Source: Pelomyxa schiedti (Eukaryota; Protista; Evosea). From it: a stretch of DNA of 64,000 bases. The position numbers and the translations under genes are program-made. Location of the stretch: NCBI GenBank assembly GCA_020536535.1, contig JAHLWZ010000016.1, positions 186,001 to 250,000 on the forward strand, in the 5' to 3' direction. The notes beneath the pieces were generated by a model. The model was not told the DNA's origin. It was given only the letters and a program-made list of their open reading frames with translations, and searched no databases. Positions 33,295 to 45,656 of the stretch are shown here, in pieces; within the stretch, counting starts at the first letter, position 1, and every line of letters begins with the position of its first letter.

Positions 33295-35010
33295 TCAGTT
33301 GCTCTGCAGTGCCAGGTAGAGGCGATCAGACGGCGTGAAGTTCTGAGGCCTGGCCCACCCGGGTCTCTTCACCCTGAACGCGCACAGCTCCCCTGATGTG
33401 CAGCCCAGCGACGGCTCGTTGTCTGGGTTCACCATCTCTTCGTTGATGGTGAAGATGCCGATGGTCTTGTTCCTTGGGTTGGTCGGCACGCCCTTGGTCA
33501 CCACCCACGCGTCCTCGTCGAGGTTGCGCACATAGTTCAGCAGGTACACCACGTCGCCGTGGGTCTTTGGGTTCCACCACCTGAGCATAGGGAAATGGTT
33601 GGCCGCGACGGCCTCGCAGTCCGCCACAGTGGATAGAACGCCCAGTGGCACCACGCGCACTTCGCGGTTTTGGAATCGGTATACTAGCCTGCTGGGTGGT
33701 GGTGGTGGTGTTGTGGTTGGTTCGAAGGAGGATGGCACTGGGGGAAATGCAGGCAACGCTGACTGAAAGCTGCGGCTTGACGGTGATCCTATTGATGTTG
33801 GTGCTGAGATTAGGGATGGTGGTGCTGCTGGTCTTGAGGGTGTAATTGGAACTGGCTGCAACGAATTTGCGAGCGTGTCTAGGCGGGTCGGCTGGGATTT
33901 TACAGCCTCCTGGGCATCGTTGTCCATTGCCAGTGCCTCTCGAACTTTCGAGACATGCAGCGCGTCTGCTTTAACTTGTTCGCGGAGCTGCATAACCAGT
34001 TCTTGGAGATTTGCGTTTATTTGTTTCTGAAGTACCAGCTCGTGAACGAGTTGTTGAATGCAAGGCATTTGACATGTGATCATATGTGCACTCGCCTCTC
34101 TTCTAGCTCCTTTCCAATTTTCCCTACAATAAGGGGATAACGGACAAGGAATCTACAGAATTTGTTATTGCTTTCCAGTAAAAGAGGTGAAAAGGTACCG
34201 TATACTCTGGGCACTGTTCATAGTGTGCATGAAGTTCCGAGTTCAGGATCTCAACCGAACAAAACCCACACTTGACCGTACCTGTTTGAAGGATTAGATA
34301 ATCTATAGAGCTGAATAGCAGGGGGGGTAAGGCTCCGACTGCATACATCTATGGTTTGCCCAATCTCGATACAAGCAGGCAGCGCCGCAGGAATTGCAGA
34401 CGACCTCTATGCGACCTAACTGATTGATGTAAGTGCCTGTACTGGTGCAAAAAAAAATTACTCACCCCGTCAAGAATTGAAGCTGGGTCTGCAATGATTT
34501 CATTATCCAACACCACTTTTTTACATGCAGCACACCAGCGGTTTCCATCAGACAAACGGGTGCATTTTTCACAAAACGCATTGCAGCATCCTGGTGCTGA
34601 ATGCATCACAACAGGGTATTTGATTACTTTTTGGCACTTTTTGCAAAGATACATCTTGTTGTTCAGTGCCTCTTGAGGGAAAATAGGTTCGTCTGGGTCA
34701 TTGGGTACCCTTTTCAAACATTAATATTACGGTTGTAGTAATTTATTATGCTTCATTTAATATTATAACTCGAAGGGGGCGGGGGAAAAAAAAAACCGCA
34801 CAAGTGAATAGTAGAAGCCTCGGCAATATTGTATTCGCGAAGCGGGTGGCCGCGTATAAGCGGGTGGCCAATGTACAGCAACTTGTGATAACGCATCGAC
34901 TTGCCGGTCTTTTCCTCTATCTGCAACAGCAACGAGTCCACGGTGTTGTCTCCGTTCGGTACGTCGACGACTAAGTTCGGCACACCATTCCCCTTAACGC
35001 ACAGCTGCAT
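33295..35010 (-). CDS. Ubiquitin-like + RING + TRAF-type zinc finger + coiled-coil protein with unknown C-terminal domain
   Basis: UBL (QIEEKTG...KLLYIGHPL..GHPLREYNIAEASTIHL) splices in frame to a RING (CKKC..VIKYPV...CCNAFCEKC...CAAC), followed by CGFC...LHAHYEQCPE and a coiled coil. Confidence 0.75.
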
Positions 35011-35460
35011 TCGAACGGGAGAAAAAAGATTTTTTTCGTTTGGCCCCCTTCGATTCTTTAAATTCCTGTCAACTTGTCTGCCACTAGAACAACTTGGAGG
35101 GCCCAGTCCTCCAGTTTTCAAGTCACATGCTCCCATGCCAGTATACAAGAATCCCTGGGTTCCAAGTCACAAGAGCTGTGAGACCTCTCTGGGAGGCCCT
35201 TAGCCTTGGGGATGTGATTGTAGATCGAATGCAGACCCCAGGGGACACGAATCGCGCAATTGAACCGGGTAGTTTTGAGCATTTACAGCAGAGAAGAGCC
35301 CAAGCCTTGTCAGAAGTTACAAGGTTGCCTCTTTTCGTTTGTCAATGGATCGTAGCGGTAGAGTCACCTTCTTTGTCCCTTCTTTCGCTTTCACGGACAT
35401 CTTGATCCATAGTCCGTTCTAAATTGCCCTGTGATCAACCATAACTAAAAAAAAAACCAG

Positions 35461-38286
35461 TTCAGTAGGCTGAGTAACAAGAAGGTGAGTGACTTTGCCG
35501 AACACCCAGGACAAATTCGCTTTGTGGGCCTATTTGGCAAAACGGATCATGGCAGAACCACAACCTTTGAGTCACTTCTTCAGTCGTACAAAGAATCACA
35601 TCCCTGTGCCCCAGGGAGTTCAGAGGAAACAACTTTCGGTAAGCTACATATAGCTTTAGATAAATGCTTGGCTGTGATTGGCTGTGATTTGATGCCTACT
35701 CTCATTCACAAAAACAAACAAAGGCCTTGAGCACATTTATACTCGTGACCCTATGCATCTGAGTACATATTTGCACACACTGCCAGATACATGCACTGCA
35801 CCAAGGGATGCTATTGTATGTATTGGACCCAACTTTGCAACTTTTTTCACTCAACGGGAGTCTTACTCTATTACGCCAGGACAACCAGTTTTTGATCCAC
35901 GTGTTTCGAACTCCCACGGTTTTTGATAGTTTTGTCAATGCTACTCTTCTTATGGATGGGGCACTTCTCGTTTTTGACTGTATGGAAGGGATATCAACGA
36001 ATTTGATTGACATAGTTCGTGACGTAAGTGCTCTTTTAAACACAGTAGTGTTTTCAACTTTTTTTTTTTGTACATATAGCTTCTGAACTGCCAAACACAA
36101 CCCGTTGCCTTTGCAAATAAGCTCGATACTTTGATTGTAAACCTTGGTTTACCATCTGAAGAGATATATATGTGCTTAGCTAGAGAAATTAACAATCTGA
36201 ATGAATTCGGGCAGCTCTATTCTAACAAGAATTTCAATCTTCACTTCTCTCCAGTCCTGGTAGAACACCTCTCTTTCCCATACTCAACCCTTAGTAAACA
36301 CCTCAGGGGACAGTCGCTTTTGGATGTGCCAGTGGGTGCTGGGCTTTCACACTCTCTCACTTTGCAAAACTGTACGCCAAAAAATTTGGTATTAAGGAAG
36401 CCGTCATGACGGAGAAGCTGTGGGGTGACAATTTCTTTGATATAAGTACAAAGAAATGGGTATCAGCCCCAGGAAAAACACATTCTGTTAGAGGATTTTC
36501 ACACTTTGTGATGGATCCGTTATTGAAATTGTGGCAGGCAGTTCAAGCAAACCAAAAACCAGCTTATGAGAAGATGACGTCAATTCTCGGTATCAATTTG
36601 TCACCAGAAGAGAAAGTATTTCACTGTTCAGAACATGTCAGATACTAACTTCTTCATAGGAAATTACAGCCCCTAACAAGTTATTCGATTGTATTATGAA
36701 AAAGTTTCTCCCATTTTGTGATACACTCTTATCGCTCTTTGCAATTCATCTGCCTTCCCCGAAAACTGCACAGACCTATAGACTCCCTTCTGCATTGACT
36801 CCTATTGACGCCCCAGCACCTTCAATGAGTTCCTGTGCGAGAGAAATGCTTTCTTGTAGCCCACAGGGTCCTGTCACTCTCTATACGTTCAGAAAGGTAG
36901 ATACAGCAAAGGAGTCACTTGTATGTGCAAGAGTATTTTCTGGTACACTTAGAGGCAAGTCAGCCGGACGTATCCTCAGTGCCCCATCTATAAATGATGT
37001 ATTGCTCTCTCTGCTAAAGATATACAGTCACATATCTTTGTGCAGATTAAGATTCCATTTGGGAACTCACTTGTAAGTGTCCCAGAATGTCCCAGTGGCA
37101 ACATAGTTGTGATTTCCATTCCACTTACCGTGAAAAATATATCCATCCCCTGCCTTACAGCTTCCACTGTATCATGCCTTCCCTTTCAACTCCCTTCTTC
37201 AAGTACATTCTTCTCTTCTGCTAGAGTGAATGTAAGGGCAATTGATTCTCGTTACAGCGTGCAGTTGGATCATGCCATTAGACGGACTGTAAATGGTGAC
37301 GCCATAAGTAAATATGAAAAAAACCGCGATGGTTCATACACCATATTTGGTCAGGGCGCTCTACATCTCGAAGTTCTTTTGAAAGATCTGAAGGAGGAAT
37401 ATTCTCCATATGAACTGGTTGTTTCTCAGACCCAGTACCCTCTTGCCGAAGGTTTGCGGGAATGTTCCCCAACAGTAAGACAGGATTACCCACCAGGAAC
37501 TGAGGAACCACTTTTATCAATGAGTGCAACAAAAATCCCTGAGCCAATTGTGAATTCCATATCAGCATTTGCTTCAGCTGGAACAACAATACCAATTGCT
37601 GTCAATAATTCGGATTTGCTATCTTTCACGGGTGGCAAACCTTGGGCCTATGGTGAAAGTCCTTTAACTGCCACGTGCATATTGGTGGATCTTAATGATA
37701 CTTCACCGGTCCTAAAGGCTCCATTTGCTCAAGCGTTCCATGTAACTTCCTGAGGTGCATTACGCTATTAATTATATTTAGACTCTGGTGACTGGCGGGC
37801 CTCTCCGTGGGAACCCTCTTAGGGGGGTTCAATTCAGTATCCTTAAATGTAGTGCCAGGTGCTTAGCTACTTCGCCTGCCGTTCTTATCAACAGTGCAAT
37901 GGAGTGTATGAGGTTGTGCCTGCTCTCTTCTTCACTGAGCGTGTGGGAGCAGACTCGTCAAGTTTCTCTTAAAGTGTGGTTTCTCCCCCACATATTTGCT
38001 CCTGTGCGTCGATAACAACACAAATAAGACTCTTCCGTCTGAAGTTGCAACGGTCTATAGCGTACTACAGGCATACCAATGCATAGATGCCAACCAAGAG
38101 GACAAGGGCGAGTTTATTGTAATAACTGGAAAAATTCCGGCAAGGCTCTGCCAAGGTGCCTTCCCCCCTGACAAACTTTGTAAGGCAATCAACACCATAC
38201 AGAATTTCCCGCATCCCTGCGGGCCAAAACAGCCGGAAAGGTATTCATCGAAATTGCACACACGACCACCTGGTCTGAGACACTAG
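35461..38286 (+). CDS. Highly divergent elongation factor 2 paralog with degenerate GTPase motifs
   Basis: eEF2-like blocks in order: IRF...DHG, DGALLVFDCMEG, NKLD, KLWGDNFFD.STKKW, KFLP..DTLL...HLPSPKTAQTYR, ARVFSGT, GALHLEVLLKDLKEE, GGPL...RGVQF. Not every splice junction was resolved. Confidence 0.8.
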
Positions 38287-38428
38287 GGATGCCATAAATA
38301 ACAGTAATGAGTAACCAGAGAATGGATTCCCCTGCACCAATCTGGAGTTCATCGACTCCTTGTTCCCATCAAAATGGAATTGTGTTACAGTGCCTTCTCG
38401 GAAAAAACAACACATGTGATCGCCATTA

Positions 38429-43983: not shown

Positions 43984-45656
43984 ATGCACCAGCCACCGAT
44001 TGTGTTGAGCAACCAGAAGACCAAAGCTGGGGATCTCAGCATAGATCCAGCCAAGTTAACCAAGTCATCGGCAGTGCACGTGTCGCGGTGCATAGGATGC
44101 AAGGTGACGATACCCTCGCCCGCCCCTGTTGCCGCAGATGAGCCCACTGCCGCCACGCCAACACCAACACCACCAACAACCACCGAGGGTGGTCCCGAAC
44201 CTACTGTTGTCGCAGTACCCAGTGTGGCTAAACTTATGTACCCTTCTACTTGTTTTTTTTGTTTTTTTTCCCTCTTTAGGCCTCATTTTTTTTTTTTTTT
44301 TTGCCCAAAACACAGTATCGAGCAATGTACCATTACCGTTGTTGCAGTTAATGTAAAAATACTGAGTGGAACAGCAGGTTTCCTCATTAATAGCGTTTTG
44401 TCATTTTCTCACTGCGGGAAGAGTGTATATCCTTAAACGGGTGTCGGGCGGAATTCAGTACCTGTGTCCCAACCATCCAAGTGGACAACTGTACTAACAC
44501 CACGATTGTACTTCCTGATAGTTGGGGTATCCCAGAAGACAGTGCAAGGCTTCACACGCATGCTTCTTTTTTTCCCCTCTGCTCAATTGACGCCTTTCTC
44601 AAGATCAAGAAACAAGGGACTAGTTATTCGCATTAAAGGAGTAGAGCACACAATTCCTGACGCTGATTATCCCCAGATTACAACGTAACATCAATCCACT
44701 GTCCCTTCATAACGCGGTAACAGGAGATCCGAGGATACACTGACCACAGAGAAGACTGTATGGGATGGTGCCGGCTACCCTACCACTGAGACCCTAAAGG
44801 AAAAAGCTGTAACTATTCCCTCTAACGCATTTTCTCCCGATTTCTCCTCAAACATCTTTCTCCTCAAGGATAGGAAGCTCCAGGAAAACCTCCAGATTCT
44901 TGAAGACAACCTCAGTGGAAAATCGTATCCCCTTACTTTATTTTTACAAGTTGACCCTTGTAGAAGCAAAACAACAACACTTGGTAAAGGTGCCGGCCCA
45001 TATGCAGAAGTACAAAAACGTCTGGTACCATATGCAAGTGAGTCTGGAGATGTACTTATAGTAGAGACACTATCCAATGATGTGATTCTTATTGAGAATA
45101 ACACTGATGCCAACTTCTACGTTTTGCAGAACCAAGTTTCTCCTCACTCAAATTAAGCTGCCCTAATCGTTGTTTGGTTATCAGAGGCTTTCGAGTCTTT
45201 TATGCATTAATTGCAAAAACTGCAAAATTTCTGCTCTTGACAGTGCTGTTATCGCCTCAAGAACTTGTCGGCTTATTGATTGTGACAATTGCACATTCAT
45301 TTTCGAAGATGTTGATGTCAGAAAAGTGGAGTGCTTCAGAACAACAAATTGCTCTATTATCTTCATTGGAGATGAAGTCGTTCTCGAGAATTCACGGGTC
45401 ATCTGGCGTGAAGGTTGCCAAAACAATACTGTTAATCAGGGAGTGATGACGGTGACAACGTCGGCCGTAAGAACACAGCACAGACTGACCAGAAGCATCC
45501 CGGTGCCACCAACAACAATTAATTGCCAATTGTGCACTACTCTTTATCCTGTGCAGCATATGCACAACTTGAATATTGTGGATAAAACCGGTAATTCCTC
45601 TCAAGCTTATTAGGGGACTCACCACTTAGTAGCCAGTGGTACGCCAGTTATTACTG
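43984..45656 (+). CDS. Protein with two CAP_C / cofactor-C-like beta-helix domains; 3' end uncertain, may continue into the sirtuin
   Basis: Repeating I.xC..C.I turns (HVSRCIGCKVTI, IEQCT, VPTIQVDN; INCKNCKI, LIDCDNCTFIF, ECFRTTNCSI) typical of CARP beta-helices. Confidence 0.6.

Follow-up and report, generated by a model that had tools for sequence, protein, structure and literature searches.

In a 64,000-nucleotide stretch of the genome of the anaerobic amoeba Pelomyxa schiedti (scaffold C16, positions 186001 to 250000; here called the window), we find a gene that is probably a maintained, noncatalytic paralogue of eukaryotic elongation factor 2 (eEF2), i.e., judging by its sequence, an old duplicate made at the DNA level that would now be neither a GTPase nor a translocase. 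The gene spans 11 exons on the plus strand (window positions 35229 to 38297; C16:221229-224297) of an assembly of 52.4 Mb in 5337 scaffolds (PMC8887013), and its product is already present in GenBank as KAH3767826.1, "elongation factor 2 [Pelomyxa schiedti]," with a length of 826 amino acids (aa). A first-pass annotation, based on the nucleotide sequence alone, had described an eEF2-derived pseudo-GTPase lacking the diphthamide loop at positions 35461 to 38286, and its reading of the gene as a whole is partly supported. The proposed bounds need correction, with 35461 being the start of exon 2 and 38286 the stop of a reading in which the last intron is left unspliced; the annotated coding sequence (CDS) covers the full 35229 to 38297.

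The region between 35.2 and 38.3 kb appears on the plus strand as a series of short, eEF2-like open frames with changing phase. Homology searches were performed exon by exon and later with the complete protein, which was retrieved by a HMMER search of a representative library with exon 8 (37046 to 37741, plus strand; 100% identity across the exon). When the mapped exon coordinates were joined, KAH3767826.1 matched the exons of the window exactly, yielding 826 codons without a single in-frame stop, closed by a TAA codon. All 10 introns (40 to 103 nucleotides [nt]) have GT-AG borders, consistent with the pattern reported for this species, in which genes contain on average 7.4 introns, 98.4% of them GT-AG (PMC8887013). 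The intron preceding exon 7, 44 nt long and containing TACTAAC, lies at position 312 of the reference eEF2 (P0012) and is shared with the eEF2-family genes on scaffolds C149 and C408, while the position of the exon 4 acceptor is identical in the eEF2 genes on C803, C792, and C434. An alternative structure for exons 2 to 4, with exon 2 prolonged to ...DKCLA and followed by one 205-nt intron, was considered, but the GenBank prediction was preferred because of its stronger donors (GTAAGC and GTATGT) and typical intron sizes. The least certain part of the model is exon 1, since the intron that follows it is not common to the paralogues, and this exon may be an annotation device that supplies a start codon.

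Motifs were compared with those of 40 eEF2 sequences (alignment A1). As had been noticed before, the P-loop AHVDHGKS has changed to GKTDHGRT, with arginine in place of the Walker lysine; switch II (DSPGHVDF) is reduced to the remnant FRTP--TV, from which both DxxG and the catalytic histidine have disappeared; and the diphthamide loop (loop 1 of domain IV; HADAIHRGGGQ, or HxDxxHRGGGQ as a pattern) is replaced by KCSARCLATSPA, aligned as S--ARCLATSPA, so that the diphthamide histidine is gone. While these losses are all real, the earlier list of them was incomplete: no counterpart of switch I (RGITIK) could be aligned, the second loop of domain IV (SPNKHNR) reads YPPGTEEP, and approximately 35 residues that form the C-terminal helix are absent. 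A search for an exon encoding this helix, continued downstream to window position 44000, detected none. Survival of the NKxD motif (G4) was correctly called, with NKLD replacing the canonical NKVD, and G5 reads CASGCW rather than SGLHGW. Of the features expected of a translocase GTPase, G1, G2, G3, and the two domain IV loops are degenerate or lost, and what is found is G4 and the five-domain architecture with its G' insert.

Conservation of what is left differs strongly between domains. Among 302 columns of alignment A1 that are ≥90% conserved in eEF2, the studied protein keeps 26 of the 31 located in G' (84%) but only 37% in the G domain, 42% in domain II, 40% in domain III, 21% in domain IV, and 34% in domain V (G' versus the rest, Fisher P = 1.9e-7); such domain-specific constraint is unlike neutral decay, which would erode all domains equally. 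When a canonical exon was allowed to decay neutrally in silico to 25 to 45% identity, 11 to 15 stops accumulated per 424 codons and zero stops were seen in 0 of 200 runs, versus an open reading frame (ORF) with no stop, and with all splice sites intact, in the studied gene. Synonymous divergence (dS) is saturated relative to every paralogue, precluding a pairwise dN/dS ratio, and nonsynonymous divergence (dN) amounts to 0.47 to 0.81 in exons 6 and 7. With saturated dS and with the same codon used for only 22 to 37% of the residues identical to those of paralogues, these residues must have withstood repeated rounds of mutation, being neither unmutated nor recently converted. Gene conversion as the source of G' conservation was ruled out on the same grounds, as only 28 to 37% of the conserved exon 6 residues share their codon with any paralogue. 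Moreover, replacements are more conservative than those produced by stop-avoiding neutral drift after identical realignment (z = 1.5, 2.6, 3.6, and 2.0 for exons 6 to 9), a signal that may in part stem from the canonical lineage. None of the hallmarks of a pseudogene (stops, frameshifts, broken splice sites, or intron loss) is seen in the GenBank model, and the initial impression of a maintained gene rather than a pseudogene is borne out by the open ORF, the splice sites, the saturated dS, and the domain-specific constraint.

Several observations weigh against maintenance. GC content varies less among the three codon positions (0.50/0.45/0.40) than it does in other family members, with the third-position value equal to that of the introns, and the amino acid composition has shifted toward random-codon expectation (C, S, L, and P up; K, E, D, and G down). 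The canonical N terminus is lost along with the C-terminal helix; exon 1 is nonhomologous and is needed merely for its ATG, no in-frame ATG having been found in exon 2 (35461 to 35638). Four of the ten introns, 1 to 3 and 10, were scored as having no paralogue counterpart. P. schiedti gene models are predictions made with Augustus, PASA, and EVM (PMC8887013), and a gene predictor could have used these four introns to bridge frameshifts or other lesions. In Pfam searches, the G domain (GTP_EFTU) alone scored above threshold for KAH3767826.1, and single exons gave only subthreshold matches. A collection of 15 billion proteins, from which records of this genome may be missing, contained no orthologue or transcript-derived protein, KAH3767826.1 forming a singleton cluster, and the best nonself relatives are ordinary eEF2s with 26 to 33% identity. 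The branch leading to the gene, finally, is extremely long, with 3.2 changes per site in exon 7. All of this would suit an eEF2 copy that diverged for a long time under weak constraint and is now a recently inactivated or never-expressed relic, with introns predicted across its lesions. We consider such a pseudogene the main rival explanation but a clearly less probable one, since exons 4 to 10 are open and joined by six introns at conserved reference positions (145 to 734) with intact GT-AG borders, since the frame beyond intron 10 still encodes the domain V motif FPASLRAKTAGKVF, and since conservation is so unevenly distributed over the domains. In addition, a neutral sequence would be expected to stay free of lesions only up to less than ~2% divergence (a rough estimate, not a computed value, in which we took the simulated stop rate and ourselves allowed for indels and splice sites), yet the synonymous sites are saturated.

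The origin of the gene within the eEF2 family was assessed by homology, intron positions, and phylogeny. A phmmer search against PDB aligned aa 50 to 823 of KAH3767826.1 with residues 7 to 805 of eEF2 (236 bits; E = 5e-69), confirming that domains G to V can all be traced. The KLWGDNFFD and HLPSPKTAQTYR blocks, previously cited in favor of eEF2 over EFL1 and Snu114, are both present. Expressed in coordinates of reference P0012, the introns are situated at positions 7, 67, 94, 145, 206, 312, ~423 to 433, 668, 734, and 778, and 7 of the 10 (94, 145, 206, 312, 423, 668, and 734) coincide with introns of at least one other P. schiedti eEF2 gene. Shared positions of this kind indicate duplication, at the DNA level, of an intron-rich eEF2 gene rather than retroposition, and a retrocopy was ruled out accordingly. 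In per-exon trees, the other P. schiedti copies form one clade and the studied gene is a very long branch without resolved placement; approximately unbiased tests did not reject a grouping of this gene with the other eEF2 genes of P. schiedti (P = 0.36 and 0.40).

A descent from eEF2 thus agrees with the initial assignment, and we deem it highly improbable that the gene is instead the amoeba's diverged orthologue of EFL1 or Snu114. Both families do resemble eEF2, which is not alone in having a KLWGD-type block, but their phmmer scores (108 bits for EFL1 and 143 bits for Snu114) stay far below the 236 bits for eEF2, Pfam finds no EFTUD2 domain (PF16004) in KAH3767826.1, and the genome has its own candidates for both: Snu114 on C76, where PF16004 lies upstream of an eEF2-like gene, and, on C310, an EFL1-like gene that has kept the start of its P-loop intact and, by its sequence, is likely EFL1. 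Nor is the gene the sole eEF2 of this organism. The gene on C149 has all motifs intact, as do those on C803, C792, C434, and C1237, so that the genome does possess the canonical eEF2 whose presence elsewhere had been proposed as a check. Although its GenBank product name and overall homology would suggest a working elongation factor 2, there is very little chance that the studied gene is one, given its degenerate G1, G2, and G3, its loss of both domain IV loops and of the C-terminal helix, and the several canonical genes with every motif in place elsewhere in the genome. These at least five canonical genes (accompanied by a fragment on C559) have 70 to 77% protein identity to each other, are saturated at synonymous sites, and carry differing subsets of a common intron set; the expansion is unusually large and old for one genome.

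What the maintained paralogue might do can be approached from the parts that it has lost and kept. With the G1 lysine, G2, G3, and the elements that reach the decoding center missing, the protein would be unable to hydrolyze GTP and would probably bind it poorly, would not drive translocation, and could not be modified to diphthamide, for which Dph1/2 genes are nevertheless present in the genome. We argue against a role as toxin decoy or toxin target because the diphthamide loop is absent; the toxin decoy suggested in the first-pass annotation is thus unlikely, as this is the loop that such toxins target, and neither of the other two roles suggested there, ribosome hibernation and anti-association, was supported.

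With A1 supplied as the alignment, AlphaFold2 gave a model (mean predicted local distance difference test [pLDDT] score, 75) that was most confident at aa 190 to 380 (the end of G and G') and least confident in the N-terminal extension, switch I, and switch II. Foldseek returned yeast eEF2 as the best structural match, although, with canonical eEF2s as the input alignment, the model can show only compatibility with this fold. The archaeal P stalk docks on EF-2 through its C-terminal helix, which occupies a groove formed between G and G', and for yeast eEF2 a matching groove on G' has been proposed (PMC5887453). Since G' is the best-kept part of the studied protein, it would be this subdomain that retains docking to the P stalk, to the GTPase-associated center, or to some other eEF2 partner that binds G', and a docked, noncatalytic protein would modulate or compete with access of eEF2 rather than replace it. 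That the protein is such a binder is a tentative proposal of low probability, against which it must be said that domains III to V, which make most of the ribosome contacts, are the least conserved.

At least four further loci (C943, C408, C2665 together with C1604, and C628) contain eEF2 copies with degraded GTPase motifs (Table 1). C943 and C408 form a sister pair with dN/dS values of 0.18 to 0.31, from which purifying selection on their clade follows, and they look like maintained genes. Like the studied gene, the copies at these loci belong to the eEF2 family of this genome and have a degraded P-loop, switch II, or NKxD motif; unlike it, they group with the canonical copies in exon trees, have 44 to 65% identity to eEF2, and in most cases retain the loops of domain IV. 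Divergence is far greater in the studied gene, which is not closely related to them. Taken together, these loci and the studied gene suggest a family of eEF2-derived proteins without a nucleotide switch. We speculate, with still less confidence than for docking itself, that in this family of non-GTPase derivatives the studied gene would be the extreme member, keeping a G' that docks to the P stalk and tuning translation as a ribosome or stalk binder, for instance by parking or shielding ribosomes in a giant anaerobic cell.

Compared with canonical eEF2 (yeast Eft1/2, PDB 1N0U/1N0V; C149 and C803 in P. schiedti), the studied protein has the same five domains and a G' insert of the eukaryote type, retains NKxD, the HLPSPxxAQxYR linker, and, in domain V, FxxxLRxxTxG, and is encoded by a gene that has intron positions in common with the eEF2 genes of the amoeba. 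It differs in having only 26 to 33% identity, an arginine for the G1 lysine, an unrecognizable G2, and a lost G3 with its catalytic histidine; in lacking the diphthamide loop, the SPNKHNR loop, and the C-terminal helix; and in its nonhomologous N-terminal extension. Snu114/EFTUD2 and EFL1/Ria1 are eEF2-fold proteins with jobs other than translocation, and both are devoid of the diphthamide histidine but keep functional nucleotide-binding motifs and a nucleotide switch. They are ancient, universal in eukaryotes, and represented here by a Snu114 and a likely EFL1, whereas the studied gene is lineage specific and has lost these motifs.

The nearest published case is aEF-2p of Asgard archaea and Korarchaeota, a paralogue that occurs beside a bona fide EF-2, has lost both loops at the tip of domain IV, and, in the authors' judgment, is no translocase (Narrowe et al. 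2018, PMC6143161). It keeps G1 to G5, is thought to be a GTPase still, and is found in archaea without dph genes (PMC6143161). The loss of the domain IV loops, including the diphthamide histidine, and the company of a bona fide eEF2 are common to both, but the studied gene has lost G1 to G3 as well and resides in a eukaryote with Dph1/2, and it therefore falls outside the definition of aEF-2p. In the open-access literature, we found no report of a eukaryotic eEF2 paralogue devoid of both switch and loops, nor of eEF2 in Pelomyxa. The best nonself matches to exon 8, at 31 to 35% identity, were environmental proteins (P0009/P0002, from JGI and Logan, and P0005) that are eEF2-like, with intact G motifs and altered diphthamide loops (HSDSAHHGPGQ and HADAIHRGAGA).

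eEF2 is among the most conserved proteins known, and Snu114 and EFL1 are, to our knowledge, its only established eukaryotic offshoots. If the gene is indeed selectively maintained, it would represent a natural separation-of-function variant, without switch and decoding loops but with the G' subdomain, from which one could learn what the eEF2 scaffold, and especially G', is capable of in the absence of GTP, and translation factors would join the growing list of pseudoenzymes. More practically, a protein that lacks the P-loop lysine, switch II, and the diphthamide loop is misleadingly labeled as "elongation factor 2," and using KAH3767826.1 to represent the species would distort eEF2-based phylogenies.

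Table 1. Exons of the studied gene and other features mentioned in the text (window positions unless a locus is named; aa numbering of KAH3767826.1)
Feature	Position	Strand	Residues	Remarks
Exon 1	35229..35357	+	1-43	ATG at 35229; N-terminal extension without eEF2 homology; pLDDT <50
Exon 2	35461..35638	+	44-103	Degenerate P-loop GKTDHGRT at 35536-35559 (aa 69-76)
Exon 3	35724..35815	+	103-133	Position of switch I, RGITIK unrecognizable; pLDDT <50 at aa 93-111
Exon 4	35880..36023	+	134-181	FRTP--TV at 35907-35921, where DSPGHVDF is expected
Exon 5	36080..36259	+	182-241	G4 NKLD kept, 36116-36127 (aa 194-197); flanking introns (reference 145 and 206) common to paralogues
Exon 6	36307..36615	+	242-344	G' subdomain with KLWGDNFFD; 45-51% identity to canonical copies; pLDDT >90
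Exon 7	36660..36998	+	345-457	G/II linker HLPSPKTAQTYR and first half of domain II
Exon 8	37046..37741	+	458-689	Rest of domain II, domain III, most of domain IV; SPNKHNR loop lost; ~22% identity to C803
Exon 9	37782..37973	+	690-753	Tip of domain IV; KCSARCLATSPA at 37845-37880 in place of the diphthamide loop; flanking introns (reference 668 and 734) common to paralogues
Exon 10	38029..38155	+	754-795/796	First half of domain V (VYSVL...)
Intron 10	38156..38202	+		47 nt, GTGCCT...ACAG; found in this gene alone; splicing restores FPASLRAKTAGKVF
Exon 11	38203..38297	+	796-826	Domain V motif FPASLRAKTAGKVF; TAA stop at 38295-38297; eEF2 C-terminal helix missing
Degraded copy, C943	L044 3700-6720			P-loop INARDGRH; switch II IE-PLKAH; NNVD; HLDTIHRGVGQ kept
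Degraded copy, C408	L045 3800-6290			DSRPNH; NNVD; diphthamide histidine replaced: MTCDINRRGGGQ
Degraded copy, C2665 with C1604	L029 with L046			Degraded G motifs
Degraded copy, C628	L047 4300-8200	-		P-loop GDFDRGCT
Ubiquitin-family ORF	34753..35148	-		Pfam PF00240, E = 1.4e-8
Cys-rich ORF	34349..34717	-		

Upstream of the studied gene, the ubiquitin-family ORF and the Cys-rich ORF are arranged head to head with it, an arrangement that leaves only ~80 to 300 nt for a shared promoter region between the eEF2-like gene and these minus-strand ORFs.

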